A DNA stretch of 64,000 nt from positions 1 through 64,000 of the IMG/VR virus record IMGVR_UViG_3300025098_000012; one strand, 5' to 3'. The notes beneath the pieces were generated by a model that saw only the letters and a list, made by a program, of their open reading frames with translations, was not told the origin of the DNA and did not search any database. A program made the translations under genes and the position numbers. This document shows, piece after piece, positions 3,614-48,784 of the stretch (within the stretch, counting starts at the first letter, position 1; each line of letters opens with the position of its first letter).

Positions 3614-3670
3614 GGTTGATTCCTTCAGTTAAGGGTTGTTTGCATTATACTGACCATAATAAATAAAGTA

Positions 3671-25128: not shown

Positions 25129-25188
25129 GCTTTGCCTTTTCTCATATAATAAGAGGATGCAAGCTGTACTTATAAGGAGGTGCGACAT

Positions 25189-27918
25189 ATGTTTGCCGAT
25201 ATGCTTGAGTCATTAAGACGACCAAATATACAACCCAAGTTGTGGATGAAAGATTGCGAGTTAATCTTAGGCACAAAGGAAAACCTAGACCAATGTATTG
25301 ATGAGTGTATCAACAGCGTTGCGTATGGGCTTGACCTTGAGACAACAGGTCTTGATAATCGTGTGTTCAACGGACGCACAAGAGATACGATTGTAGGGGT
25401 CTGCTTGTCAGCCCATAAGGATAAGGGGTACTATTTCCCTGTTGGTCATCAAGAGGGTGTGGAACATAACATTCCTTGGAGATTGATGTATCCTGCACTT
25501 GAGCGTCTGCTTGACCTCTCTGTGAAAGCAGAGCCTATATTCCACAACGCCGCTTTTGACCAAGAGTTTTTGGAGTTCAACGAGTACAAGTCGGGTCTTG
25601 GTGAGGAGCGTTGGGACTCATTTGAATGGCACGACACCTATATCATTCAGTATCTCTTGAACCCTCGTGAAAAAGGTGGTCGAGGACTAAAGCATTTAAC
25701 TAATGCCCACCTTGAGCGAGAGATGATTGAGCTATCAGATCTTATGCCCGATGCTCCCGACAAGAACTACTCCAAACTTGATGTGAGTTGGGAACCATGT
25801 GTTTGGTATGCCGCTAGTGATGCAATGTGTACGCTTGGACTATGGGAAGTACTTTATAAGAAGTACACCGAAGCTAAAGAACACACTAACTCGATGTATA
25901 AGTTAGAGCGTATGTGTCTACTTTCAACTCGTTGGATGCACAGAAATCGTGTCTACATTGATCGAGACACAGCCTTAAAGTATAGCCAACAGGGGCAGAA
26001 GCTATGGTTCGACTCTCTGATTGATGTCTATGATGGAGCAAAAGAAATCTTAGGTCGAGACATTACCCCTAACTATGTTCGAGTCCTTAAAGGAGATCTG
26101 AAGGGAGAAAACAAGTTTAACCACATGGAAGTGGAGGGGATGAGCTATAAGACTCGTGTAGACGAAGCTCGTAAAGAAGCCTCTCGACTTTACCCCGATG
26201 AAAAGGGAGTAGTCACTAAGGCTGTGAAGATTATCGGTAAGAGTGTAGGTACAGAGGAGATTGAGTTTCCACTTACTTATGACATCCTATCCCCTCAAAA
26301 GCTCGGCTTGTTATTTAGAGAGTTGAGTGTTCCAGGTCTTAAGGCGAGTGAAAAATCGGGTCAGGTCGTTACTTCCAAAGACATTCTTGAAGAGGTCATT
26401 GAGAAGGCTTCTGATGACTTTCCATTTATGGCTAAGGTTAAGACCTTTCGTGAGCTTGGGAAGGCAATGGGTCAGTATCTCATTCCATTTGTAGAAGATG
26501 TTGGACCAGATGGGACTCTCAAGCCTAAGTTTGATCAGTTTGCCGCTGACACAGGTCGTTTTTCATGTAAGACGAATAGTAAGCCTTGGAAAGTTAAAGA
26601 TGGAGGGTGTCGTGTTCCCTTTCAAGGCATACCTGCTACCTATGACCCAAATAAACCCGAAGCTGTTGCTAAGATGCGTTCTTGTGTGGCTGTGCGTGAT
26701 GACGATTGGTGGTTAGCGGCCATTGATTACGCAGGTGTAGAGCTTCGGCTAGTTACGAACTTGAGTCTTGAGCCTAAGTGGATCAAGGCTTTCTTTGAAT
26801 GTTCAGAATGTGGCACAGCTTACCCACAAGAAATTCAAGAAGACGGATTCGCCAAAGCACCTCCATCTAACTGCGTGAACTGTGGGTCTGATAAGATTGG
26901 AGACTTACATACGATCACAGCAGTTGCGTTTTATGGCGAGGGAGCTAAGAAGCGTGATGATTGGAAAGCGTTAAGAGGTAATGGTAAGGGTTGCAACTTT
27001 GCTTTGTCTTATGGTGGTACAGGTAAGGCTGTTCAGCGTACTATTGGTTGTTCAGCCGAAGAAGCAGATGAGAAGTTCAAGAAGTTTACATCAACTTATA
27101 GTGAACTGACTAAATGGTGGTCTAAGCAACACAACTTTGGTCGTAAGCATGGATATGTAAAGACAGGTATGGGTCGTGTTCAACCATTACCCGACATCAA
27201 GTCTGATGACTTTAGGTTTAAATCCAAAGATGAGCGTAAGGCTGTTAATGGTCCAGTACAGGGTACGAGTGCTGATGTCACCAAGTTGGCGATGAGCTTC
27301 ATCTACCAAGAGACTAAGAAGCGTGGTTGGCAAGATAAACTGATGATGATCTTGACCGTCCATGACGAAATCGTGTTCGAGATCCATAAGTCGATCTTGA
27401 AAGAGGCGATTGATATGATCTCCGAGATGATGACTCGCAACAAAGTGATTAAGCGTCTAGGTTGGCGAGTGCCTTTACTTGTCGATGTTGAGCTTGGTAA
27501 GGATTGGACTGTTCCTTTTGATGTGAAAGATGTGATTGCAGGAGAAGCAGGGGATAAGGTCATTAACGCTAAGTACAAGTGCAAGGATTGTGGTGAAAAG
27601 ACTCCTCGTGACCCTAAACCGACTGCGTGTATGCACTGTGGTTCGACTAACATTAAAATTGATTACAAAGATGACTTCATTGCCAAGATCAAGAAGCAGA
27701 CGGAACAACTTTATGCCGACTATGGGGTAAATCCCGATGAAGTTGTCAAAGAGGTGGTTGTAGAAGACCCTGTTGAGAAATCGTCCGATAAGCCCACCTT
27801 TTGTGTTGAGGGACTGACGGAAGAAATCGCAAAAAACCTGTCCGATTGGATTAAATCGCAAGATGGTGAGTATGATGTGGTATATGAAGGACGGAGTATT
27901 ATTGCATTATTAGAATGA
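25189..27918 (+). CDS. polA: Family A DNA polymerase with 3'-5' exonuclease and two zinc-ribbon insertions
   Basis: Exo motifs DLETTG, HNAAFD, YAASD; polymerase motifs A (IDYAGVELR), B (RGNGKGCNFALSYG), C (TVHDEIV). ATG 25189 has AAGGAGG 8 nt upstream (the track uses GTG 25180). Confidence 0.96.
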   Translation: MFADMLESLRRPNIQPKLWMKDCELILGTKENLDQCIDECINSVAYGLDLETTGLDNRVFNGRTRDTIVGVCLSAHKDKGYYFPVGHQEGVEHNIPWRLMYPALERLLDLSVKAEPIFHNAAFDQEFLEFNEYKSGLGEERWDSFEWHDTYIIQYLLNPREKGGRGLKHLTNAHLEREMIELSDLMPDAPDKNYSKLDVSWEPCVWYAASDAMCTLGLWEVLYKKYTEAKEHTNSMYKLERMCLLSTRWMHRNRVYIDRDTALKYSQQGQKLWFDSLIDVYDGAKEILGRDITPNYVRVLKGDLKGENKFNHMEVEGMSYKTRVDEARKEASRLYPDEKGVVTKAVKIIGKSVGTEEIEFPLTYDILSPQKLGLLFRELSVPGLKASEKSGQVVTSKDILEEVIEKASDDFPFMAKVKTFRELGKAMGQYLIPFVEDVGPDGTLKPKFDQFAADTGRFSCKTNSKPWKVKDGGCRVPFQGIPATYDPNKPEAVAKMRSCVAVRDDDWWLAAIDYAGVELRLVTNLSLEPKWIKAFFECSECGTAYPQEIQEDGFAKAPPSNCVNCGSDKIGDLHTITAVAFYGEGAKKRDDWKALRGNGKGCNFALSYGGTGKAVQRTIGCSAEEADEKFKKFTSTYSELTKWWSKQHNFGRKHGYVKTGMGRVQPLPDIKSDDFRFKSKDERKAVNGPVQGTSADVTKLAMSFIYQETKKRGWQDKLMMILTVHDEIVFEIHKSILKEAIDMISEMMTRNKVIKRLGWRVPLLVDVELGKDWTVPFDVKDVIAGEAGDKVINAKYKCKDCGEKTPRDPKPTACMHCGSTNIKIDYKDDFIAKIKKQTEQLYADYGVNPDEVVKEVVVEDPVEKSSDKPTFCVEGLTEEIAKNLSDWIKSQDGEYDVVYEGRSIIALLE

Positions 27919-37177: not shown

Positions 37178-37525
37178 TTAAGATTTCCACCAATCATCGA
37201 ACGCACCCCATTCGATCATCTCATATAGATCAGTAGGGATCGACCCGACACAATCATGGTGAAACCACTCACCATTTTGCCTTATACGCCACCTTTTAAG
37301 GTCTTCATGTAGGTGTGGTTCTCTCCACCCTAAACCTTCAAAAGAGGCTATAAGACGAAGCGTATTTGAGTTTCCTGTTTGAAGTTGCTTGAGTCTCTTC
37401 TTTGGGTGCTTAGAGCGACCTATCTTAATCATCCCTGTTTTGCTTTACTGGATGAAGTACAGATAGTCGCCCTGCTTTCGTTGCTTCTGCTCACGATTTC
37501 TATTTAACATTTCTTCTAAAGTCAT
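37178..37525 (-). pseudogene. T5orf172/GIY-YIG-like nuclease with in-frame TAA at codon 27
   Basis: From ATG 37525 (SD AAGGAG): MTLEEMLNRNREQKQRKQGDYLYFIQ*SKTGMIKIGRSKHPKKRLKQLQTGNS; stop at 37445-37447 falls inside the conserved first motif. Confidence 0.75.
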
Positions 37526-37573
37526 ATTTTACTCCTTACTTACATTATATGAGATTAGAAGAATGGAGTCTGT

Positions 37574-38749
37574 TCAGAAAAAATACTCATTATCATTCCA
37601 TTTAGGTTCGGGTGTTAAACCCTTACTCCAAATGAAGATCGGCTCACAAGTTGGTTGGTCTGTTTTCTGACCACCTCGCTCGGACATACGATAGCCAACC
37701 ACACCCTCATAGGTCGCTCCTAAGTTCTTCATGTGGTCAAGCATTGGTGTGCAGATGTCCTCTCCTTTTTTATCTGCAATGTTGATTGCTATCCGACCAC
37801 CTTCTTTGAGTACAGACCAACATTTAGTGAGGGTAGCGAGTAAGAAATCATTCACCCAATCATTAAGGTTTGGATAACGCTTCCACGATTGAGTCTCCTC
37901 CTCACTATATCTCTCGATGTCGAAGTAAGGAGGACTCGTGAAAACGAAGTCTACACTTATGTCAGATAAATCAGCATCCTCAGCAGGGGAACAGATAAAC
38001 CTAGTCGTTTTGCCTGTATCACAGAGGCTGACGATTTGCTTGTATGGCTCATGGAGCTGAGTATTAGGATCTATACCTATGTACGACTCAGCGTTCGAGG
38101 CGAGGAAGCCTACAAGCCTATCACCCCAACCAGCCGAGAAATCTAAGACGCTTTTGGGTTGGAACAGGTCATAGAGAGCTTTAGCCGACTCAGCTTTAAA
38201 CTGACTCGCAGTATAGGTGTGCATCTTTAAGGCTCTTCTGAGGGTTTGCTTATTGACTCCACCTCTCTCATAGATGTCTCTTTCACAAATGCCGAAGAAG
38301 CATCTTAGGAACGAGTTGCTTCTACTCGCATTGACCCACTCATCATAGGGTGAGTTTCCTTGTTTACGATAGCTACATTTCATTCTCTGTTCTTGGGTGA
38401 ACAGATTGGAAACAGTTTTCCCTCTATAGTAGTTATCAAGGTAGACTGACTTGCCTAGATAACTTGTGTCTAAGGGTTTAGCTTGACGAGGAGCGACCCA
38501 CCCTTCAAAGCAGAATGGATCTTTCCTTGCTTTGAGGGATTTAAAATCCTCGATTGCCATCTCTCTTGTGTACTCGAAGTACGGATAGGGCAAAGACTCA
38601 ATAATGGGTGCTAGATGGTCTTTGATCTGTTCCTTACTATATGTCTCACGAAGCATACTCCATTCGTTAGGGAGTATGTGAAGATACCCATCTTTAATGT
38701 ACTCGATGTCATCTAGCGAATTAAGATTGGTCTTATATTCAAAGTACAT
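37574..38749 (-). CDS. SAM-dependent amino (N4-C/N6-A) DNA methyltransferase, paralogue 3
   Basis: Motif I VLDFSAGWGDRL and motif IV FTSPPYF. Confidence 0.88.
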   Translation of the reverse strand: MYFEYKTNLNSLDDIEYIKDGYLHILPNEWSMLRETYSKEQIKDHLAPIIESLPYPYFEYTREMAIEDFKSLKARKDPFCFEGWVAPRQAKPLDTSYLGKSVYLDNYYRGKTVSNLFTQEQRMKCSYRKQGNSPYDEWVNASRSNSFLRCFFGICERDIYERGGVNKQTLRRALKMHTYTASQFKAESAKALYDLFQPKSVLDFSAGWGDRLVGFLASNAESYIGIDPNTQLHEPYKQIVSLCDTGKTTRFICSPAEDADLSDISVDFVFTSPPYFDIERYSEEETQSWKRYPNLNDWVNDFLLATLTKCWSVLKEGGRIAINIADKKGEDICTPMLDHMKNLGATYEGVVGYRMSERGGQKTDQPTCEPIFIWSKGLTPEPKWNDNEYFF

Positions 38750-39610
38750 TTAAGCACCTAAGTTCCAGAATAGGGTTTTCCCTTTTAACTTGTAAGGGTT
38801 TTCAGTGATCCACTCCCACGCTTTTTTATCCCAAAGTTTATTGCAAGGGAAAGGGGTTGTGAAGTGATCCATCTCATCGTAGAAATCAAACTCTGACTTA
38901 TAAATCTTGAGGCAAGATGGAACGCTACCAAGATTAGAGATCAGAGCATTTTGTATTGTCTTAACGCTAGAAGTAGCAACGATTACAATCTTCTTGCCTT
39001 CAAAGTCTGGCTCAAACATCGCTCCTGCAATGTAATCAACACCTAAGAAACCTTTAATCAGCCCAACACTTGTGATCCCACTTCCGCCTTGAATGACTAG
39101 GGTGTTGTACTCATTTTGAGAAAAGAACTCTTTAGAACGCTCTGTCCAATAGTTGATATAGACAGGGTGGTTGAACGCATCTGGACTCATTTGCCAATTA
39201 TTTTTTCTAGCCATCTTCTTTGTCTGAGAAGACAAGATAGCTACCATGTTGTGTCTTAAGGGGATCAGCTCTCCACCGTACAGCTCGATCTTCTTAAGAA
39301 TTTCTTGAGAGTACGCTTTTGTGTTTGGGTAAGCTATTTTGATGTCATAACCTAGCTCTTTGCCCCAATAGGCTAACGCCCAGCCTGTATATGATCCTCT
39401 AACTGTGAGATGTACGATGGGCTTATCTTTTGTGAAATAGTCTGAGGAGAGAAGTCTCCTTATGCCTTCAAGTTTAGCCCAAGGGGGGAGGTCGAGAGTT
39501 CCGTTGAGCAGATCATCTCTTTTGACATCGACATTTTTGTGTTTGACTTTGTAAGTTTCAATCGGTGTATTAAAATTTAGCACTAAACATTGCCTTTTCT
39601 TCAAACTCAA
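38750..39610 (-). CDS. Fold-type II PLP-dependent enzyme (ACC deaminase/D-Cys desulfhydrase/Cys synthase-like)
   Basis: TPIE...VKRDD...PPWAK (candidate PLP lysine), GSYTGWALAY, LVIQGGSGITSVGL, YD.KAW-like WDKKAWEW, LFWNLG. Start may be GTG ~39583. Confidence 0.82.
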   Translation of the reverse strand: MSLKKRQCLVLNFNTPIETYKVKHKNVDVKRDDLLNGTLDLPPWAKLEGIRRLLSSDYFTKDKPIVHLTVRGSYTGWALAYWGKELGYDIKIAYPNTKAYSQEILKKIELYGGELIPLRHNMVAILSSQTKKMARKNNWQMSPDAFNHPVYINYWTERSKEFFSQNEYNTLVIQGGSGITSVGLIKGFLGVDYIAGAMFEPDFEGKKIVIVATSSVKTIQNALISNLGSVPSCLKIYKSEFDFYDEMDHFTTPFPCNKLWDKKAWEWITENPYKLKGKTLFWNLGA

Positions 39611-40481
39611 TGTCCTTGAGTATTTGGTTATATATTGCTCTTGTGTCTTTATATGAAGTGCCTTTTAACAGCACTCTTCTATGTAAACCTTTTAGACCAC
39701 CGTCAGTGCCTGTAGTATGGAAGTTTGATCTGTTCGTATTGTGTTTATCAAAGTATTCTTTATGTGTATGCTGAGTAATGAACCATTTAGGTTGGATCTT
39801 ATTATTTGCAGGATTAATGAGTAGCTGATCCCATAGTAAAGTCTTACATAAAGATTCTATTTGAGGTGTGCGAAAAGGACACAACACTTCAACCCCTGTT
39901 TTTTTTAAAAATTGTCTTATCACCCACAAGTTGTGTGGGCTACCAGAGAGGTACTTTTCCTCTAACTGTTTCTCTACTAAGTTTTTAAAATAGTTATCGA
40001 GGGAAGCCCTAGACCCACCTTTTTTGTATGCACCCCAAAGGCTGTTGATTTTAGCTCCTGTATGAGCAAACATCGTAGTGTAAAAGCCTGTTACTAGATA
40101 AGGTGTAGTTATCAACTGTCTCATGTAAGTATAAGCATGACAAACCTGTGTCTCTATATTCCTCGTTGTGCGTGTAATCTTAATGACTTCTTTAACTTCC
40201 CTTAACAGGTCATCACGAATGGGATTTGAGGGTATCACTGCAACTTTCAAAGGTAGGTCATAATGCTTTGCTATTTGTCGAGCATACTCAAGGTCTTTGG
40301 AATACTCACCTTCAATCTCAAAGGTAATCAACTCTTTTGGTGGCCTTCCTAGTTCTATCATTGTGAACAAAAGCATGGAAGAGTCTATCCCACCAGAAAA
40401 CGATAAACTGATTTCATTGGGAAGGTTTTTCACAGAGTCATAGATTGCTTCTTTAAAGTCTTGTACCCATGTGTGTGTCAT
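39570..40481 (-). CDS. Stand-alone asparagine-synthetase-like PP-loop ATP pyrophosphatase (no glutaminase domain)
   Basis: LSFSGGIDSS, DLEYARQIAKHY, LVTG, LCPF; lacks the N-terminal Ntn domain and the QueC Cys cluster. Confidence 0.8.
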   Translation of the reverse strand: MTHTWVQDFKEAIYDSVKNLPNEISLSFSGGIDSSMLLFTMIELGRPPKELITFEIEGEYSKDLEYARQIAKHYDLPLKVAVIPSNPIRDDLLREVKEVIKITRTTRNIETQVCHAYTYMRQLITTPYLVTGFYTTMFAHTGAKINSLWGAYKKGGSRASLDNYFKNLVEKQLEEKYLSGSPHNLWVIRQFLKKTGVEVLCPFRTPQIESLCKTLLWDQLLINPANNKIQPKWFITQHTHKEYFDKHNTNRSNFHTTGTDGGLKGLHRRVLLKGTSYKDTRAIYNQILKDIEFEEKAMFSAKF

Positions 40482-41160
40482 ATCTTCTCATCAACTCTCT
40501 TGAGTTTTTTAACTCATTGTTTTGAGTTCTTACATGACAAGAATGAGCAAACGAGGTTACGAGTCCGAAATCTAAACAGCCACTCTCTTTACAGAGAAAA
40601 TCACAGAGATCAACGAGTGCCATATAGTCTGCGTATCCAGACTTAGATACAGCTTGGCTTCTAAAGTTAGCTGTTAAGTTAAGTTTCCCACCTCTAGGTT
40701 TCAAGTCGATTGTCAGTAAGCAAGGCAAACCGCCCATTACTTTTTTACCATCCGATTGAGGATCATACACACCAATAACGATTGTTTTAGCTTGCTTGTT
40801 CTCTCTTAGTCTCTTGATCGCCTGCTCGATTTGATTAAATCCACCGTTCCAAGAAATCATGCGACCCCAATAACTATTTGTCCATTTCCCCTCTTTGTTC
40901 TGTTTATACTCCAACATTTGTGGGAACAACATATTCGGTTCTGGCTTCACAAATGTAACAGACTTAGCGTAGTCGATACGCTCATCTCCAAAGATGCCTC
41001 TGAACTCCCGATCAAATACAGGACAAACATCGGATGATTTGATCTCGATACCCATGTTCAAGATCTCATAAAGACCACCCATATTCATGCCTTTGTCAAG
41101 AATGTCTTGAGTCGCTTTGACCCATGCTTCTGCACAGTTATTTGCTGTTATATGGTACAT
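40453..41160 (-). CDS. Thymidylate-synthase-fold pyrimidine-modifying enzyme, dCMP-hydroxymethylase-like (divergent)
   Basis: NQIEQAIKRL, catalytic LPC, KLNLTANFRSQAVSKSGYADY (Asp at the TS Asn177 position), AHSCH. Confidence 0.82.
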   Translation of the reverse strand: MYHITANNCAEAWVKATQDILDKGMNMGGLYEILNMGIEIKSSDVCPVFDREFRGIFGDERIDYAKSVTFVKPEPNMLFPQMLEYKQNKEGKWTNSYWGRMISWNGGFNQIEQAIKRLRENKQAKTIVIGVYDPQSDGKKVMGGLPCLLTIDLKPRGGKLNLTANFRSQAVSKSGYADYMALVDLCDFLCKESGCLDFGLVTSFAHSCHVRTQNNELKNSRELMRRYDTHMGTRL

Positions 41161-41163
41161 ATC

Positions 41164-42369
41164 TTATACTCCAAAGTAGCTATCTTGAGTCCACTTAGGT
41201 TCGGGGGCTGAACCCTTACTCCAAATGAAAATCGGCTCACAGAATACATCCATCTTGGATAGCTCATCATTTAATGAGTGATGGTTTCCTGGTCTCTTTG
41301 CCATACGATAACCAATCACTCCCTCATAGTTTGCCCCTAATGAATTCATATACTCGATCATGGGCTGACACACTCGGATGTTTCCTCTTACTTTATCGGA
41401 GATGTTTACGCATATCCTCCCTCCCTCTTCTAAGCAATCCCAACATTGCTTGAGGGTTGGGTAAAGAAACCCATTCAGCCAATCGTCAGTCTCTGGATAA
41501 CGCTTCCATGATTGAGTCTCTTCTTGACTATATTTCTCGGTGTCGAAATAAGGTGGACTCGTGAAAACGAAGTCTACTTTAACATCGGACAGGTCAGCAT
41601 CTTCGGCAGGTGAACAGATGAACCTAGTGGTCTTACTCGTAGAACAATAATCAGCGATCTTCTGATAAGGTTCATGTAACTTTGTGTTAGGGTCGAGTCC
41701 TACATAGGACTCGGCATCAGAAGCGAGGAATCCAACTAATCTATCGCCCCATCCCATAGAGAAATCCAATACTCTTTTAGCTCCGAAGAAGTTATACATA
41801 GCCTTAGCTAAAGTAGGTTTGAACTGTGCAGGGATATAACCAGACATACCGATAGCGTTTACAAGTATCTTGCTGTTCACACCTTTTGACGGATCATACA
41901 ATGTCCATAAAGGTCTAAGGAACGCTCTCTTTTTGGACTTGAGGTTAGTTCGTGTCCATTGTCTCATTGCACTTGGGAACTGCTTATGGTCTACCTCTAA
42001 ACGCATAGGTTCACTATATTGATTAGAGACTTTGAGTCCTTTGTTATTAGGTGCGAAGTAAAGATACTTACCTTTGTAAGTATGGTCTTCGTCTAACTGA
42101 CATCGAGGCAATCCCCAAGCACCCGATTGAGGGATCATGTAATCGGACTGAACCTCCAACCAATCTTTCTTGATCTCTTGTGGTGTGTACTTAGTGAGGG
42201 GGTAAGGTAAATCTTCAATCTTTGCAGACAGATAATCAGTGATCTCATCTCTGCTAAAGCTATCTACCATTTCTAACCACTGATGGGGTGGGATAAAGAT
42301 TTCATCCCCTTTCAAAACCTCATACTCTTCTAGGTTATCTTTTTTGGTTTTTTCATAGTCAAAGAACAT
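41164..42369 (-). CDS. Amino DNA methyltransferase, paralogue 2
   Basis: VLDFSMGWGDRL; FTSPPYF; highly similar to 42403-43608. Confidence 0.88.
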   Translation of the reverse strand: MFFDYEKTKKDNLEEYEVLKGDEIFIPPHQWLEMVDSFSRDEITDYLSAKIEDLPYPLTKYTPQEIKKDWLEVQSDYMIPQSGAWGLPRCQLDEDHTYKGKYLYFAPNNKGLKVSNQYSEPMRLEVDHKQFPSAMRQWTRTNLKSKKRAFLRPLWTLYDPSKGVNSKILVNAIGMSGYIPAQFKPTLAKAMYNFFGAKRVLDFSMGWGDRLVGFLASDAESYVGLDPNTKLHEPYQKIADYCSTSKTTRFICSPAEDADLSDVKVDFVFTSPPYFDTEKYSQEETQSWKRYPETDDWLNGFLYPTLKQCWDCLEEGGRICVNISDKVRGNIRVCQPMIEYMNSLGANYEGVIGYRMAKRPGNHHSLNDELSKMDVFCEPIFIWSKGSAPEPKWTQDSYFGV

Positions 42370-42402
42370 ACTTAAATCCTTTCAAGATACTTACTTATAA
42401 GA
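42370..42402. repeat. Duplicated intergenic spacer/RBS (second copy 43609-43637)
   Basis: Sense strand TCTTATAAGT...TCTTGAAAGGATTTAAGT precedes both 401-aa MTases. Confidence 0.85.
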
Positions 42403-43608
42403 TTATATCTTAAAGTAAGTATCTTGAGTCCATTTAGGTTCGGGAGCTGAACCCTTACTCCAAATGAAAATCGGTTCGCAAAACACATTTACCTTAGACA
42501 GATCCTCGTTCAATGAGTGATGGTTTCCTGGTCTCTTCGACATCCTATAACCAATCACTCCCTCGTAAGTAGCACCTAATGACTCCATGTATTCAATCAT
42601 GGGTTGGCATACTCGTATATCACCATAAACCTTGTCTGATATATTGACGCAGATCCGTCCTCCGTCTTCTAATACCTCCCAACATTTTTTAAGAGTCGGG
42701 TAAAGAAATCCATTGAGCCAGTCATCTGTTTTGGGGTATCTCTTCCAACTCTGAGTATCTTCTTGGCTATACTTCTCGGTATCAAAGTAAGGAGGGCTTG
42801 TGAAGATAAAGTCTACTTTAACATCAGTTAGGTCTGCATCCTCAGCTGGAGAACAAATGAACTTAGTTTCTTTGTTTGCATTACAGTACGAATCTATTTG
42901 TCCATAAGGTTCATGGAGCTTAGTGTTAGGGTCGAGTCCTACATAGGACTCAGCGTCAGAAGCCAGAAACCCTACGAGCCTATCGCCCCACCCCATTGAG
43001 AAATCTAAGACCTTCTTTGCACCGAAGAAGTTATACATAGCTTTAGCTAGTGTTGGTTTGAACTGTGCAGGTATGTAATAAGCCATATTTATAGCGTTAA
43101 AGAGCATTTTCCTATTAACCCCTTTAGACCTGTCGTATAGGGTGAAAAAGGGTCTAAGGAAGTATCTCTTATCGCCTTTCATCCCTATACGAGTCCATTG
43201 AGTCATAGCACATTTGTACTCTCGATGATCTACTAATACTCTTGCGAACTCGGTGAACTGATTAGAGACTTTGAGTCCTTTGTTATTAGGTGCAAAGTAA
43301 AGATGCCTACCTTTATAAGTATGGTCACCATCTAACTGACATCGAGGCAATCCCCACTCTCCTGTGATTAGAGGCATATAGTCCGACTGAGTATCTAGCC
43401 AATCACGATGCACTTCTTGAGGAGTATATTTAGTATATGGGAATGGCAGTCCTTCAATCTTGCTTGATAGGTAAGTGATGATCTCATCACGAGTAAACTT
43501 ATCAAGCATCTCTGACCACTGATGAGGGGGTATGAAGATCTCTTGTCCTCTTACGACATCATATTCCTCTATGTCTTCTTTGGGTTTCTTTTCATAATCA
43601 AAAAACAT
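42403..43608 (-). CDS. Amino DNA methyltransferase, paralogue 1
   Basis: VLDFSMGWGDRL; FTSPPYF. Confidence 0.88.
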   Translation of the reverse strand: MFFDYEKKPKEDIEEYDVVRGQEIFIPPHQWSEMLDKFTRDEIITYLSSKIEGLPFPYTKYTPQEVHRDWLDTQSDYMPLITGEWGLPRCQLDGDHTYKGRHLYFAPNNKGLKVSNQFTEFARVLVDHREYKCAMTQWTRIGMKGDKRYFLRPFFTLYDRSKGVNRKMLFNAINMAYYIPAQFKPTLAKAMYNFFGAKKVLDFSMGWGDRLVGFLASDAESYVGLDPNTKLHEPYGQIDSYCNANKETKFICSPAEDADLTDVKVDFIFTSPPYFDTEKYSQEDTQSWKRYPKTDDWLNGFLYPTLKKCWEVLEDGGRICVNISDKVYGDIRVCQPMIEYMESLGATYEGVIGYRMSKRPGNHHSLNEDLSKVNVFCEPIFIWSKGSAPEPKWTQDTYFKI

Positions 43609-43637
43609 ACTTAAATCCTTTCAAGACACTTATAAGA

Positions 43638-43923
43638 TTATACTCCAAAGTAAGTATCTTGAGTCCATTTAGGTTCGGATGGGTTAGAACCTTTATACCA
43701 AACAAAGATCGGTTCGCAAAACACGCACCCTCCAACAACCCCTTGATTTTCCTGGTCTCTTTTTCGTCCTGTATCCGATAACTCCCTCATATGATTTCTT
43801 TCCTTGTGTATTGATCTAGGATAGAATCCCACAGGTCAGACGGTATTGAGAACTCGTTGTTCTCATTTAATAGCTTTATCTCCTTGAGGGGTGGGAGTTT
43901 AGGCTTTTCGATTTCAAAAACAT
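43638..43923 (-). pseudogene. Internally deleted, frameshifted relic of a fourth methyltransferase paralogue
   Basis: N-terminal piece (MF-fs-EIEKPK...IPSDLWDSILDQYTRKEII) abuts C-terminal pieces (YEGVIGYRTKKRPG; VFCEPIFVWYKG...EPKWTQDTYFGV), each in a different frame; about 0.9 kb including both catalytic motifs is missing. Confidence 0.85.
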
Positions 43924-45449
43924 TACAGATCCATCAGAGCATCTAAAGGATCATCAAACACTTCGGTCTTTTTGTTCTTATTCTTGTAGGTGGTGTTCGT
44001 TTGGAACTGCAAAGGCATATTTAGAACACGACCATAGGGCCAGACGATTTGAGCGTCAAACTCCTCAAAAGGTGCTTGATCACGAGACTTGAGGCATTGG
44101 TATTTAACCATGCTGTTCTCACGCTTATCGTCACCATACCAACTTGAGATAACCACATCTGCTGAACGCTCTGCTTCATTGGCATAACTCAAGTGGGTAA
44201 GGTTGTATGACCCACCATTCTTCTCAGCCGACTTAAAACCCTCACGACTGATTTGGAATAGGCAGAGAACAGGAATGCCCTCACCCCGATTGAAGCCAAG
44301 AGCTGTCTTTTTAAGATCACGAATGACCTCATTAAGACGATCTGTAGTTGAGGCTACCCATTTACGAGGTGAAACGAGTAAGGCATGGTCTACAACCATC
44401 ATCTTGAATGGGGTTTTTTGATAAAGTAGCTCGGAACGAGTACGGATGTTCTCAACAGTAAAATCAAGCACATCTGGATCAGCTACCTCGATATGGATTG
44501 ACCCATAAACCCCATTTTTCATATTGTCATCAAGATCTTTGACAACCTCTTTCATGTATGCAACTTCGTCTACACTTAACAGACCCTTTTTGATCTTATC
44601 GGGATCTATCCCTGCGTCTGTTTGCCCTTGTTGAATACCTAGAGCAATACGCTTCTCTCGGAACTTGGGGTGCATGGAATGATACACATAGATAATGCGT
44701 CTACATTGAGGGTAGTGCATTTCAAGAGAGAAATATAGAGTGCTTGTGCCACCATAAACTGCTTGGTTGTAAACCCAGTTAAGTGATGAAGTAGACTTAA
44801 GGTGTCCTGTAAACGCCGCCATGATGTAAAGCTCTTTACGCTTAAATCCACCAATAGCATTATCAATGATCTGTAATCCTGTCTGTGGTCTTATATCTGT
44901 GGAGGCATTTTTGGTGCGTTCATATTCTTCCCAAAAGTCAGACCCATCACCTAAGATTTCTCCCCCGATACGAGAGCCGAATGTTGGTGTGTTGATCTTA
45001 GCGATCTCATTTAAGAGGAAGTTCCCTGCATCTCTTGACCCCTTAAGGATCTTCTTTTGTCTACCCTCTTTGACTTCTAGTCCTGTACGAGCGATAACCT
45101 TAGCGTCTGCCATAACGGACGCTAGTTGAGTCATGCGTCCTTCCTCTACTCGCCTTTCAATGAGCGATACAAAGTCTCCACGATAAGAGACAGGACGGTT
45201 AGCGATCTGTTGGATACGATCAGCTTCATCAAATGATTGGTTTTCTTCAAAGTGTTCACGAACAGATTGTTGTGATGGTAAATGTCCATGTTTGAGGGTG
45301 AAGTCCTCAACATACTCAAACACATTGATCTCGGCAGGTAGGTCAAAGCGTAAGACCGACTCTTTAAGAGCACAATAGTTTTGGAACATGAGCTTGGGGT
45401 CATCCCCTCTAGGCTCATCTGGAAGTACGCTTCGTAATATATCACTCAT
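43923..45449 (-). CDS. dnaB: DnaB-like replicative helicase
   Basis: Walker A-like AAFTGHLKS, Walker B MMVVDH, FQISREG, EAERSADVV, LKSRD. Confidence 0.9.
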   Translation of the reverse strand: MSDILRSVLPDEPRGDDPKLMFQNYCALKESVLRFDLPAEINVFEYVEDFTLKHGHLPSQQSVREHFEENQSFDEADRIQQIANRPVSYRGDFVSLIERRVEEGRMTQLASVMADAKVIARTGLEVKEGRQKKILKGSRDAGNFLLNEIAKINTPTFGSRIGGEILGDGSDFWEEYERTKNASTDIRPQTGLQIIDNAIGGFKRKELYIMAAFTGHLKSTSSLNWVYNQAVYGGTSTLYFSLEMHYPQCRRIIYVYHSMHPKFREKRIALGIQQGQTDAGIDPDKIKKGLLSVDEVAYMKEVVKDLDDNMKNGVYGSIHIEVADPDVLDFTVENIRTRSELLYQKTPFKMMVVDHALLVSPRKWVASTTDRLNEVIRDLKKTALGFNRGEGIPVLCLFQISREGFKSAEKNGGSYNLTHLSYANEAERSADVVISSWYGDDKRENSMVKYQCLKSRDQAPFEEFDAQIVWPYGRVLNMPLQFQTNTTYKNKNKKTEVFDDPLDALMDL

Positions 45450-46249: not shown

Positions 46250-47125
46250 ATGATCAAGTCGCCTCTTAATTACATTGGAGGGAAATCAAAGCTGTTAACT
46301 CAAATCGTACCCAGATTCCCTACTCAAGTTGATACCTTTGTAGACCTCTTCGCAGGAGGGTGTACTGTAGGCTTAAATGTTCGCTCAAATAAAACTATCT
46401 TCAATGATAATCTAACTTACTTGATAGACCTATATCGGAAGCTACAAGATTTAAGTGCCGAAGAGGTTTTTGAACACATAAATGGAAGGATTGACACTTT
46501 AGGTCTTTCTAAAACGAATGAGACTGGATACATCGCCTTAAGGTCTGAGTACAATGCAAACAAAAATCCGTTAGACTTGTTTGTTCTAGTGGCATACTCA
46601 TTCAACCATCAAATTAGGTTCAACAATAGCCATCAGTTCAACTTGCCTTTTGGTAAAGACAGAAGCCACTTCAATAAAACAATGAAGAGAAACCTTCGCT
46701 CGTTCTTAACGAGAATTAAAGAGATGGACTGCACATTTTCAAATGTCTCTTTTGAGGACTTTGATTTCTCGGATCTGACTAAGGAGGATCTTGTTTACTG
46801 CGATCCTCCTTACTTGATCTCTACTGGAAGTTATAATGATGGAAAGCGTGGCTTTAAAGGATGGGGGAATACAGAAGAGGAATGTCTACTAGACTTGCTC
46901 GACAGTTTAAATGAGAGAGAGGTACGCTTTGCTTTATCTAATGTCGTGGAACATAAGGGAGAAGAAAACAATCTCCTCAAAGATTGGGTTGGGGATAGAG
47001 GGTACAACCTCTACCCTCTTAACTTTGACTACAAAAACAGCTCATATCAAGGTTCTTCAGAAGGTGAGACTAAGGAAGTGCTTATAACTAACTACCCAAC
47101 GAACTATTCTCTTTTGTTTTTTTGA
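46250..47125 (+). CDS. dam: Dam-like (D12 class) N6-adenine DNA methyltransferase
   Basis: SPLNYIGGKSKL, FVDLFAGG, SFNHQIRFN...FNLPFG, YCDPPY, EVLITNY. Confidence 0.92.
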   Translation: MIKSPLNYIGGKSKLLTQIVPRFPTQVDTFVDLFAGGCTVGLNVRSNKTIFNDNLTYLIDLYRKLQDLSAEEVFEHINGRIDTLGLSKTNETGYIALRSEYNANKNPLDLFVLVAYSFNHQIRFNNSHQFNLPFGKDRSHFNKTMKRNLRSFLTRIKEMDCTFSNVSFEDFDFSDLTKEDLVYCDPPYLISTGSYNDGKRGFKGWGNTEEECLLDLLDSLNEREVRFALSNVVEHKGEENNLLKDWVGDRGYNLYPLNFDYKNSSYQGSSEGETKEVLITNYPTNYSLLFF

Positions 47126-47128
47126 TGC

Positions 47129-48784
47129 TTACTTAACTTTTATAATGTCTCGTGCGTCATCGAGCAGACCATCAAACAGATCAGCGATTTCAGACTGACC
47201 CACCTCAAGAACAGCATCATCTTCTCCGTCCTCTTTAAGACGCTTACCTAAGACAGCTTCAATGAGGTTCATCTTAGCCTTTAGGGTTTTCATTACCCTC
47301 TCGTCAATCGTCTTAGGAGCACAGATATGGTAGCTATAGACTTTATCGTGAATAGACCCAATACGGATCATGCGACCAATAATCTGTAAGTAATCACCTG
47401 CTGACCAAGGAGTGTCGAAAAAGATAACAGCCTTAGCAAGTTGGAGGTTTACACCTTCGGCAGCCGCCATTGTGATGAGGCAAACCTTAGTGTCGCTCTC
47501 AGCATCTTGGAAAGCCTTCTGACTCTCAAGACGCTGTTCGCCCGACTCAGCTCCTGTGATACGACAAGTCTTGACCTTCTTGCTCTCGATTTCTGCTTCG
47601 AGGATGTCTACCATACCCCTAAAGCGAGAGAAGATGATGACCTTTTCACCCTCAAGCTCATTCTCTAAAAGGTCAAGCAAGGTGTCGAGCTTACCAGAGT
47701 CTCCATCACAGTCAATCAATGCAGGGTGGTTTACGATTTGTTGACAAACGGTGACTGCTGTCAGTTTCGTTACTTCACGCTCCATGACCTCGCCTGTTTC
47801 GGGGTCGAGATACTCAAGTAAACCTTCAAGAGCTTCTGCGTATTTGTTCTTTTGAGGCTTAGATAGCTCGCAGTTTACAACCTTTGTTGTAAGAGGGGGC
47901 AACTCCTGTGCAACCTCATGCTTAGGGCGACCTAAGAAATAAGGGTCGATGTGTTCCCTAAACGCTTCGATGTCTCGCTTACGGTGTCCGACTACGATTT
48001 GAATTCGCCTACGAGAACCAGGGATGGGTTGATCTCTAGTGATGCAATACTCACGCATAAAGTGAGTCTTTGTAGAAAACAGATGGGGAACAGTCACCTT
48101 ATAGATCGCCCATGCTTCCATAAGTCGGTTCTTAATGATGGTCGCTGATAAAGACCACACACGCTCTGCTGAACCTGCGAGATGTTTACAGACTTGGTGG
48201 ACTTGAGAGCGATCATTCTTGAAGGCTGTCGCTTCATCAAAGATCATCACATGACCTGTGATGTCTTGGAGGTGTTGGAAATCTTGGACTGCTGTCCGAT
48301 AACCCATAATGAGAGCTTTAGGGCCTTCATAAGCCTTGAACTCATTGTGGATTTTCTCACGCTTCTTCTTTGTGCCTAGACACTTAAAGACCTTAACCCC
48401 TGTGGTGAACTTATCGAACTCGGACTCCCACTGACCTACAGCCGACTTGGTAGTACAGATAAGAGCAGGTATATCGGGTCGTTTATCCCATAAGTAAGAG
48501 AGCGTAGCGATGGTTTGTAAAGTCTTACCTAGACCTGTATCATCACCAAGTACAAAGCGAGGCATAGCGAGTAAGTGCAATACACCTTGTATCTGATACT
48601 GTCTTAGCTGAAGCTCTGCCCCATTAGAGAGATGAGTGTTGAGTATCTTACAGGCAGGTGGAGTCAGATCGTCTTTGACTCTGATCTCTCTGAGCTTTTC
48701 AATCGTAGCGAGTAGTTTCTTGTTGTCCATATGAGTACACCCCTCCTTTGGGTGTGGAATGTACTTATATGATCTATCCTTCAA
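47129..48784 (-). CDS. SNF2-family helicase/translocase
   Basis: GDDTGLGKT, FDEAT, SAT, KVIIFS, AEGVNLQ, QIIGRMIRIG. Confidence 0.93.
   Translation of the reverse strand: MKDRSYKYIPHPKEGCTHMDNKKLLATIEKLREIRVKDDLTPPACKILNTHLSNGAELQLRQYQIQGVLHLLAMPRFVLGDDTGLGKTLQTIATLSYLWDKRPDIPALICTTKSAVGQWESEFDKFTTGVKVFKCLGTKKKREKIHNEFKAYEGPKALIMGYRTAVQDFQHLQDITGHVMIFDEATAFKNDRSQVHQVCKHLAGSAERVWSLSATIIKNRLMEAWAIYKVTVPHLFSTKTHFMREYCITRDQPIPGSRRRIQIVVGHRKRDIEAFREHIDPYFLGRPKHEVAQELPPLTTKVVNCELSKPQKNKYAEALEGLLEYLDPETGEVMEREVTKLTAVTVCQQIVNHPALIDCDGDSGKLDTLLDLLENELEGEKVIIFSRFRGMVDILEAEIESKKVKTCRITGAESGEQRLESQKAFQDAESDTKVCLITMAAAEGVNLQLAKAVIFFDTPWSAGDYLQIIGRMIRIGSIHDKVYSYHICAPKTIDERVMKTLKAKMNLIEAVLGKRLKEDGEDDAVLEVGQSEIADLFDGLLDDARDIIKVK

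Follow-up and report, generated by a model that had tools for sequence, protein, structure and literature searches.

Three minus-strand open reading frames that overlap one another lie at positions 38750–41160 of the analysed window, the 64,000-nucleotide stretch covering positions 1–64,000 of IMG/VR record IMGVR_UViG_3300025098_000012, which derives from a jumbo phage with a genome of at least 226 kb. They encode a thymidylate-synthase (TS)-fold enzyme, a stand-alone asparagine-synthetase (AsnB)-type PP-loop synthetase domain and a predicted fold-II PLP enzyme, and are placed between paralogous SPPY-motif methyltransferases, downstream of dnaB. The features of the region are, all on the minus strand:

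43923–45449 (-), DnaB-like helicase, the upstream gene on the same strand (context only, not proposed as a pathway member)
42403–43608 (-), SPPY-motif amino-methyltransferase, paralogue 1 (401 aa), with a family-specific N-terminal domain
41164–42369 (-), SPPY-motif amino-methyltransferase, paralogue 2 (401 aa)
40453–41160 (-), TS-fold enzyme, inferred to modify pyrimidines at C5 and to be of the cytosine type (235 aa)
39570–40481 (-), stand-alone AsnB-type PP-loop synthetase domain (303 aa), a distant CmoY homologue with no glutaminase domain
38750–39610 (-), predicted fold-II PLP enzyme of the M6 gp52 family (286 aa from the TTG at 39610; more likely 277 aa from the GTG at 39583)
37574–38749 (-), SPPY-motif amino-methyltransferase, paralogue 3 (391 aa)

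The TS-like and PP-loop genes overlap by 29 nt. The PP-loop and PLP genes overlap by 41 nt if the TTG start at 39610 is used and by 14 nt with the in-frame GTG at 39583, which gives the 277-aa protein called in the relative L010. The PLP stop abuts the start of the next methyltransferase (38750/38749), and the upstream methyltransferase ends 3 nt before the TS-like start. The region has no excess of promoter-like or terminator-like sites. DnaB was identified by Pfam DnaB_C (1.1e-15) and PHROG 19 (2.7e-34) and keeps the same position in the relatives L010–L012 and L019. The only other methyltransferase in the window is Dam-type, at 46250–47125. The arrangement described in the initial annotation is confirmed; it is far beyond chance. 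The same gene order recurs in dozens of independent viral contigs.

The TS-like protein matches Pfam Thymidylat_synt (PF00303) with 27.1 bits, above the cut-off of 24.3 (E 2.7e-6), and the short archaeal TS model TIGR03283 at 9e-19, its best match, although below the equivalog cut-off. Alignment with E. coli ThyA shows that the equivalents of the catalytic Cys146 (in a Cys-Pro pair), Arg166-Ser167, Tyr94 and His207 are kept, whereas Asn177, which recognizes uracil in dUMP enzymes, is replaced by Asp178; these residues are invariant in 79 of 79 family members. The Asn-to-Asp switch for dCMP is documented (PMC8670742), and argues against dTMP synthesis. The protein also departs from thymidylate synthase proper in lacking the Asp169 folate contact (Ala, Arg or Thr occupies this position) and the last ~55 residues of ThyA, the C-terminal closing segment, so its co-substrate is uncertain. 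T4 gp42 dCMP hydroxymethylase, the dCMP methylase of the Xanthomonas phage XP12 type and the Streptomyces CMP hydroxymethylase MilA share the catalytic residues and the Asp, but the protein studied here is much shorter. Its best PDB sequence hit is MilA, and this match is weak (E 0.04).

The PP-loop protein matches Pfam Asn_synthase (PF00733) with 33.2 bits against a cut-off of 21 (E 5.8e-8) and carries the motif SFSGGIDSS; SGGxDS is conserved in 75 of 75 members. It begins directly with the synthetase domain, without the N-terminal Ntn glutaminase domain and Cys2 of glutamine-dependent asparagine synthetases, and scores only 31.8 bits against the TIGR01536 cut-off of 267. An AF2 model (pLDDT 90.4) was compared by Foldseek, which placed carbapenam synthetase, beta-lactam synthetase and AsnB synthetase domains first (TMq 0.60–0.65, at a sequence identity of only 13–16%), against about 0.3 for TilS/TtuA/LarE. 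The expected chemistry of this fold is adenylation of a carboxylate followed by attack of an amine. The closest characterized relative, which the initial annotation had not identified, is CmoY, a proven ligase that amidates 5-carboxymethylcytosine (5cxmC) in DNA with glycine (PMC12783734). Homology to the CmoY family is distant but extends over the full length (hhalign probability 99.2%, E 7e-20, 257 columns; BLASTP 26% identity to SpCmoY, E 5e-10).

The PLP protein scores 32.1 bits against Pfam PALP (PF00291), just below the cut-off of 35 (E 9.6e-8), and matches PHROG 7093 over its full length (6e-23). It is a full-length homologue of phage M6 gp52, which decarboxylates C-alpha-glycinylthymidine in DNA (PMC8989533): a tblastn search with gp52 hit positions 38756–39586 with 27% identity over 297 aa (E 1.7e-20; 27–29% across the comparisons made). 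Lys46 aligns with the proposed PLP lysine of gp52, Lys36, and is present in 71 of 71 members, and the C-terminal motif PFPCN..D.K.W.W is shared.

We considered whether the trio could instead make a modified nucleotide or nucleoside-like small molecule that is not incorporated into DNA, for example a mildiomycin- or bacimethrin-like antimetabolite or an anti-defence or signalling compound, with the neighbouring methyltransferases acting as ordinary anti-restriction DNA methylases. The MilA match, the beta-lactam and carbapenam synthetases at the head of the Foldseek list, the frequency of AsnB-family and fold-II PLP enzymes in natural-product pathways, and the fact that carriers still avoid restriction sites would be consistent with this. 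However, the nearest characterized relatives of both tailoring enzymes act on DNA polymers, the module is found among replication genes and DNA methyltransferases in every lineage, and no export or self-resistance genes were seen. We regard this reading as unlikely.

The three flanking methyltransferases match Pfam N6_N4_Mtase (PF01555) above its cut-off (28.9–37.5 bits against 26.7), with E values of 3.3e-9, 6e-8 and 1.4e-6 for paralogues 1, 2 and 3. Motif I (DFSxGWGDR) and motif IV (TSPPYF) are invariant, as in ordinary N4/N6 amino-methyltransferases. Paralogue 2 is 32% identical over its full length to the 410-aa protein beside the trio in the relative L023, and its catalytic half is about 32% identical to a Vibrio phage N4-cytosine methylase. 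The best Foldseek matches of its AF2 model (pLDDT 82.7) are Trm11/TrmN/type I M amino-methyltransferases. As Trm11 and TrmN are tRNA m2G methyltransferases, an RNA target (phage or host tRNA) is not excluded; the Cmo system derives from tRNA modification (PMC12783734), and PP-loop enzymes are frequent tRNA modifiers. Modification of RNA by the whole module nevertheless appears very unlikely, because TS-fold enzymes act on mononucleotides, Pfam assigns the methyltransferases to the DNA N6/N4 family, gp52 and CmoY act on DNA, and the genomic context is DNA replication.

Co-occurrence of the trio in other genomes, a condition on which the initial annotation had staked its proposal, was then examined. 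The TS-like gene was found in 79 viral contigs; within 6 kb of it lies an AsnB/PP-loop gene in 75, the PLP gene in 71 and the same ~400-aa methyltransferase family in 63, with most misses at contig ends. Clustering at 70% identity gave 12 TS-like lineages, of which 11 had at least 3 kb of sequence downstream and could be scored for AsnB/PP-loop (present in 10 of 11) and PLP (8 of 11); the methyltransferase is present in 10 of all 12, and TS-like plus methyltransferase is the most constant pair. The methyltransferases are thus not mere surroundings, as they had first been treated, but a co-conserved fourth component. Orthologous TS-like (43–48% identity), PLP (39%) and methyltransferase (32%) proteins travel together while the ligase is swapped between a stand-alone domain and a full AsnB starting MCGI, and most lineages use the full-length, glutamine-dependent form with Cys2. 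A few lineages replace the PLP enzyme with a radical-SAM enzyme, and in the relative L019 a radical-SAM domain is fused to an SPPY methyltransferase. The genomic setting comprises replication and nucleotide metabolism genes: DnaB, PolA, ribonucleotide reductase (RNR), PolB and a MazG-like gene. No cultured phage and no paper was found with this module.

The conserved grouping bears on the possibility that these are unrelated auxiliary metabolic genes that merely sit together (a thymidylate or dCMP-methyl synthase, an asparagine synthetase and an ACC-deaminase/D-cysteine-desulfhydrase-like enzyme). The L023-type AsnB passes the NCBIfam asparagine-synthase cut-off (TIGR01536, 287 against 267 bits) and could be an ordinary asparagine synthetase, the PLP family gives weak hits to the ACC-deaminase/D-Cys desulfhydrase subfamily and is annotated as "threonine dehydratase" in databases, and public annotation calls the TS-like protein "thymidylate synthase". 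Against this, adjacency and overlap are conserved in 8 to 10 of 11 lineages that share only 43–57% TS-like identity while the surrounding genes differ, the window ligase lacks the glutaminase domain and resembles CmoY, the PLP protein is specifically of the gp52 family with the shared PFPCN motif, and Asp occupies the Asn177 position. We consider this explanation improbable.

The partners of the known pathways were looked for by tblastn. In the thymidine hypermodification pathway of Pseudomonas phage M6 and Salmonella phage ViI, a dUMP hydroxymethylase, a 5-hmdU DNA kinase, the amino-acid:DNA transferase aGPT-Pplase2, a radical-SAM isomerase and the PLP decarboxylase gp52/gp226 act together (PMC8989533). 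The present module resembles it in the TS-fold enzyme, inferred to pre-modify a pyrimidine at C5, in the gp52 homologue and in gene content that varies combinatorially between lineages, including radical-SAM variants. However, no homologue of gp51, gp53 or gp54, and none of the kinase, the aGPT-Pplase or the M6 radical-SAM enzyme, was found in the window, which covers only 64 kb of a genome of at least 226 kb, or within 6–10 kb of the gene used to fetch each of 86 module loci, and no other enzyme that attaches an amino acid to a 5-hydroxymethyl base was found. In their place, an AsnB-type enzyme and the SPPY methyltransferase family are core members, and the TS-like enzyme is of the cytosine type and only 235 aa long. 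In the CmoA/CmoX/CmoY system of Synechococcus phage S-B43, which makes 5-carboxymethylcytosine and its glycine amide (PMC12783734), cytosine C5 is likewise the target, as inferred here, and ligase versions with and without a glutaminase domain exist in both systems. Searches with SpCmoA, SpCmoX and the PaBG homologues, however, found nothing significant in the window (only two PaBG CmoA fragments of 20 and 42 aa at E 0.39 and 0.85) and nothing at E<=1e-3 in the 86 loci. Without the Cx-SAM synthase CmoA and the C5 carboxymethyltransferase CmoX, the C5 substituent must come from a TS-fold enzyme at the nucleotide level, and a gp52-type PLP enzyme is present that the Cmo system lacks.

Taken together, we propose that the three genes and the flanking ~400-aa SPPY methyltransferases form a dedicated and widely conserved phage module that most likely converts cytosine in phage DNA into a C5-substituted base with an amide-bearing side chain derived from an amino acid. 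What the analysis establishes is the gene arrangement, the homologies, the conserved residues and the recurrence of the gene set; the base itself and the target atom and nucleic acid of the methyltransferases are inferred only, and every enzymatic step, including decarboxylation on DNA and formation of a 5-hydroxymethyl product, is inferred from homology at 23–30% identity. In this view, the TS-like enzyme would attack C6 of dCMP with Cys147 and place a one-carbon unit on C5, giving 5-hydroxymethyl-dCMP by default or, alternatively, an exocyclic methylene captured by an amine. The modified nucleotide would then be phosphorylated and incorporated by the phage family-A polymerase. The AsnB-type enzyme would adenylate a carboxylate and turn it into an amide, using ammonia from glutamine in most lineages, where a primary amide should result, and free ammonia or an amine or amino acid in the window lineage. 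The gp52-type enzyme would form a Schiff base through Lys46 with a free alpha-amine and remove the alpha-carboxylate, and the methyltransferases, whose N-terminal halves differ between paralogues, would N-methylate either cytosine N4 in particular sequence contexts or the new amide or amine.

Amidation and decarboxylation compete for a carboxylate unless the unit is dicarboxylic; the most economical building block is therefore a dicarboxylic amino acid such as aspartate, the native AsnB substrate, which would give a beta-alanine-amide-type side chain on the C5 methylene, although this last point is a low-confidence guess. Restriction-site avoidance in carriers is strong, which argues against blanket protection and tempers the idea of a fully protective base replacement: the window has no ACGT, CCGG or GCGC in 64 kb, which is not expected if every cytosine were shielded, and other carriers lack GATC. 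For the higher-level claim of a dedicated cytosine hypermodification module our confidence is moderate. The interpretation in the initial annotation is thus partly supported: the cytosine-type TS homologue, the amide-forming PP-loop domain and the lack of a recognizable 5-hmU kinase or aGPT-Pplase agree with our findings, and the PLP enzyme is more than analogous to the M6/ViI tailoring enzymes, but the proposed order of amide linkage followed by trimming is one of several possibilities.

It is about as likely as not that a previously unknown hypermodified cytosine, carrying an amide-containing C5 side chain derived from an amino acid and possibly N-methylated, is made by a four-enzyme route that needs neither kinase/aGPT-Pplase chemistry nor Cx-SAM, and that this route is widespread among uncultured marine and freshwater phages, including jumbo phages, in glutamine-dependent, glutaminase-less and radical-SAM variants that would give a family of related new bases. 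Phage DNA hypermodifications decide the outcome of restriction, CRISPR and type IV defence and have supplied enzymes for epigenetic sequencing and DNA labelling. Known amino-acid-type hypermodifications are almost all on thymine and depend on a DNA kinase plus a transferase, and the one carboxyl-handle system on cytosine depends on Cx-SAM, whereas this module combines homologues from both (gp52, CmoY) with a cytosine-type TS-fold enzyme and its own methyltransferase family in at least a dozen phage lineages with no cultured representative. If confirmed, it would provide a new natural DNA base or a family of them, a new way to attach or build an amino-acid side chain on cytosine, possibly a DNA- or side-chain-directed use of an (S)PPY methyltransferase, and new reagents for DNA functionalisation.

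A less likely alternative is that the modification is post-replicative and sequence-specific, with the methyltransferase-like proteins as the DNA-targeting transferases. They might move a carboxyl-bearing group from SAM, such as 3-amino-3-carboxypropyl (acp), as MccD, Tyw2 or Dph2 do; the AsnB-type enzyme would then amidate that carboxylate, as Dph6 does in diphthamide synthesis, the PLP or radical-SAM enzyme would tailor it, and the TS-like enzyme would only supply a 5-substituted cytosine as the acceptor. A methyltransferase-fold acp transferase is paired with a PLP decarboxylase in microcin C synthesis (MccD/MccE), and acp with a PP-loop amidase in diphthamide. The conservation of the methyltransferase family with the trio over its full length, including the special N-terminal domain, the three or four paralogues whose N-terminal halves differ, the radical-SAM fusion in L019 and the constancy of the TS-like/methyltransferase pair would fit this scheme. 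However, motifs I and IV are those of ordinary amino-methyltransferases, the closest folds are methyl-transferring enzymes, the catalytic half resembles an annotated N4-cytosine methylase, nothing in the sequence shows a different SAM orientation, and acp has a single carboxylate, so that AsnB and a decarboxylase would still compete. The restriction-site avoidance in carriers fits partial, motif-limited modification.

The sequence is part of an uncultured jumbo phage and is identical to IMG/VR contigs of 226.7 kb and 108.9 kb, with relatives on contigs of 290-375 kb. The observation reported in the initial annotation, of three overlapping genes for a TS-like, an AsnB-like and a PLP enzyme within a run of methyltransferases downstream of dnaB, was confirmed. 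A block of genes on the same strand runs from dnaB down to position 37574 and consists of:
43923-45449, minus strand, dnaB
42403-43608, minus strand, ~400-aa methyltransferase
41164-42369, minus strand, ~400-aa methyltransferase
40453-41160, minus strand, TS-like gene
39570-40481, minus strand, PP-loop gene, overlapping the TS-like gene by 29 nt
38750-39610, minus strand, PLP gene
37574-38749, minus strand, third methyltransferase, starting right after the PLP stop

The mechanically assigned start of the PLP gene (TTG at 39610) is probably not the real one, and the in-frame GTG at 39583 is more likely, giving the 277-aa product called in relatives and a 14-nt overlap with the PP-loop gene. The region shows no excess of promoter-like or terminator-like sites, as a scan for both gave fewer sites than shuffled sequence. 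A megablast search with 37500-43700 found no DNA similarity to known phages, and sequence searches of the PDB were nearly empty for the TS-like, PP-loop, PLP and methyltransferase proteins.

The TS-like protein passes the Pfam TS threshold and matches the short archaeal TS model at 9e-19, which is below the cut-off of that model. Its best PDB sequence hit, a weak one, is the CMP hydroxymethylase MilA. Alignment with E. coli ThyA and the M6 dUMP hydroxymethylase showed that the equivalents of the nucleophilic Cys, Arg166-Ser167, Tyr94 and His207 are present, and that Asp occupies the Asn177 position, which is the documented uracil-to-cytosine switch (PMC8670742). The Asp169 folate contact and the C-terminal ~55 residues of ThyA are missing. 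All six catalytic-site residues are invariant in 79 of 79 family members. Judged from its sequence, the protein is therefore an active-looking, cytosine-type pyrimidine C5 enzyme, albeit one of uncertain product and one-carbon donor.

The PP-loop protein has the SGGxDS motif and passes Pfam Asn_synthase, but lacks a glutaminase domain. A confident AF2 model (pLDDT 90.4) superposes over its whole length on the synthetase domains of carbapenam synthetase, beta-lactam synthetase and asparagine synthetase (TMq 0.60-0.65), whereas it fits TilS, TtuA and LarE poorly (about 0.3). Its only hit among cultured phages was a hypothetical protein of Staphylococcus phage vB-SscS-F1, which lies between a small SAM-methyltransferase-like gene and a C5 DNA methyltransferase and is 35% identical to SpCmoY of Synechococcus phage S-B43. 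CmoY is the ATP-dependent ligase that joins glycine to 5-carboxymethylcytosine in DNA (PMC12783734). A profile-profile comparison of the window family with the CmoY family gave 99.2% probability over 257 columns. The protein is therefore a distant member of the clade of stand-alone, carboxylate-adenylating, amide-forming enzymes that includes CmoY. We considered whether it is simply the CmoY of a Cmo system and rejected this, because the window has no CmoA and no CmoX. Cultured phages do carry CmoA-like, CmoY-like and, in vB-SscS-F1 and PaBG, adjacent C5-methyltransferase genes, which are annotated as hypothetical protein, asparagine synthase or tRNA methyltransferase and probably make 5-carboxymethylcytosine amides, as S-B43 does. 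They were found at 7260-9778 of the locus from Staphylococcus phage vB-SscS-F1 (L001; L numbers denote the loci fetched for comparison), at 3647-6801 of that from Pseudomonas phage PaBG (L017) and at 5139-6807 of that from Erwinia phage Y3 (L018).

For the PLP protein, Pfam PALP falls just below its threshold, but PHROG 7093 matches over the full length. A tblastn search found the PLP enzymes of Pseudomonas phage M6, YuA, PAE1 and related phages at ~27% identity with 97% coverage. M6 gp52 is the biochemically proven PLP-dependent decarboxylase that converts C-alpha-glycinylthymidine in DNA to 5-(2-aminoethyl)uridine (PMC8989533). In the family alignment, window Lys46 aligns with gp52 Lys36, the proposed Schiff-base lysine, and a C-terminal PFPCN..D.K.W.W signature is shared. 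Lys46 is present in 71 of 71 members.

Close relatives of the PP-loop protein (48-100% identity) all lie in the same methyltransferase / TS / PP-loop / PLP / methyltransferase arrangement. A full HMMER profile search found about 300 more distant relatives, and the contexts sampled from these again showed the TS-like gene next door. The TS-like family is much larger. In lineages sharing only 43-48% identity, the TS-like gene is followed by a complete 501-aa glutamine-dependent AsnB, which starts MCGI and passes TIGR01536, and by a 278-279-aa protein that is 39% identical to the window PLP enzyme. Seventy-nine viral loci were then fetched with the TS-like profile and scored with HMMs built for this analysis. 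Within 6 kb of the TS-like gene, an AsnB or PP-loop gene was found in 75 of the 79 loci, the PLP gene in 71 and the ~400-aa methyltransferase family in 63, and most of the misses are contig ends. Clustering of the TS-like proteins at 70% identity gave 12 lineages, of which 11 had at least 3 kb of sequence downstream of the TS-like gene and could be scored for the downstream genes. AsnB or PP-loop is present in 10 of these 11 lineages and PLP in 8 of 11, while the methyltransferase is present in 10 of all 12. The methyltransferase beside the trio in L023, a locus of the freshwater lineage (L023-L025), is 32% identical to the window paralogues over the full length, including the N-terminal domain, which prompted us to treat this family as a fourth component of the module and not as mere surroundings. 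In the same freshwater lineage, a 390-aa protein with an ABC-type ATPase signature and a C-terminal GNAT-like motif (L023, 5766-6938) lies between the methyltransferase and the TS-like gene and could be a further tailoring enzyme, for example an acetyltransferase.

Three lineages lack the PLP gene and carry a ~450-aa radical-SAM enzyme instead (L019, 4486-6891; L103, 7899-9269; L098, 6838-8184). In L019 the radical-SAM domain is fused to an SPPY methyltransferase domain. We examined whether these proteins are homologues of M6 gp53 and rejected this; they look like B12-type radical-SAM enzymes, but only weakly, with weak similarity to B12-type radical-SAM methylases and to ArsL. A single 710-aa ORF joining the TS-like protein to AsnB in another module locus (L107, 6001-8133) had the appearance of a Rosetta-stone fusion. 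However, the junction lacks the last ~15 aa of the TS-like protein and the first ~14 aa of AsnB, including the glutaminase Cys2, so that it looks like an in-frame deletion rather than a designed fusion and is given little weight.

The partners of the known pathways were searched for by tblastn with six queries: the M6 aGPT-Pplase2, 5-hmdU kinase and radical-SAM isomerase, and CmoA and CmoX from S-B43 and PaBG. Nothing significant was found in the window and nothing in 86 module loci, while gp52 hits 77 of them. Pfam and PHROG scans of about 45 window ORFs found PolA, an SNF2 helicase, a Dam-type methyltransferase and a GIY-YIG nuclease, but no kinase, glycosyltransferase or dCTPase, although many of the ORFs have no match and the genome extends well beyond the window. 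PolA (25180-27918, plus strand) is a family-A DNA polymerase with a 3'-5' exonuclease domain and a C-terminal zinc-ribbon/HypA-like segment (residues ~795-830), and is the enzyme that would have to accept any modified dCTP. The Dam-like enzyme (46250-47125, plus strand) is a D12-class N6-adenine methyltransferase with a DPPY motif, and lies on the strand opposite to the module next to the SNF2-family helicase (47129-48784). In three other module loci, a MazG-like (PRA-PH) NTP pyrophosphatase lies two genes upstream of the TS-like gene (L026, 6221-6643; L027, 6356-6778; L028, 6356-6778), which recalls the T4 dCTPase/dCMP hydroxymethylase pairing; no counterpart was recognized in the window.

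No cultured phage in the 50,697-record collection has the TS-like family or the full-length methyltransferase family, and none was found with the module. The TS-like protein gave only ~24% tblastn hits to unrelated TS genes, the PLP protein hit only M6-like phages, and the full-length methyltransferase hit none. Full-text literature searches found no description of this gene combination, although they leave aside whatever the 2013 survey of DNA-modification systems by Iyer et al. may have predicted. The closest statement found is that amidoligases and amidotransferases of unknown function co-occur with kinase/aGPT-Pplase thymidine clusters (PMC8989533). Phage pyrimidine hypermodification as such is known, and we place the module within it, as a gene combination for which we found no precedent and with a product base that is probably new.

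The gene arrangement, the conservation of the catalytic residues, the homologies and the co-occurrence rest directly on the analysis, whereas every enzymatic step is inferred. In the inferred route, the TS-like enzyme would modify a cytosine nucleotide at C5 and the AsnB-type enzyme would form an amide on an adenylated carboxylate, using ammonia from glutamine in most lineages and free ammonia or an amine or amino acid in the window lineage. The gp52-type enzyme would carry out Schiff-base chemistry on a free alpha-amino acid, most likely decarboxylation, and the SPPY enzymes would N-methylate. The tailoring steps may take place on nucleotides or on DNA, and the unit would have to be attached by some route other than a recognizable kinase/transferase pair. 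Amidation and decarboxylation each need a carboxylate, and the simplest consistent building block is therefore a dicarboxylic amino acid such as aspartate, which would yield a beta-alanine-amide-type side chain on the C5 methylene of cytosine; this remains a doubtful guess. A serious alternative is that the methyltransferase-like proteins are the sequence-specific transferases of a SAM-derived group, by analogy with diphthamide and microcin C. Isoelectric points were calculated as a possible hint of DNA binding but were uninformative, as the DNA-acting gp52 and CmoY are themselves acidic to neutral.

The idea of a fully protective base replacement is tempered by an extreme avoidance of 4-bp palindromes in the window (1-64000), which is also seen in L005, L010, L023, L026, L042-L051, L098, L099 and L104. 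The window contains no ACGT, CCGG or GCGC and one CGCG in 64 kb, where about 105, 42, 59 and 49 are expected per strand, and GGCC (16 observed, 67 expected) and AATT (55 observed, 203 expected) are also depleted. Relatives show the same pattern. Such avoidance suggests that the DNA is still exposed to restriction at these sites, and the modification may therefore be partial, motif-limited, or not protective against those enzymes. The 6-mers AAGCTT, CCATGG and ACATGT are likewise absent from the window. Other module-bearing lineages lack GATC entirely (0 of 67, 0 of 149 and 0 of 117 expected), whereas GATC is not avoided in the window, which encodes the Dam-type methyltransferase.
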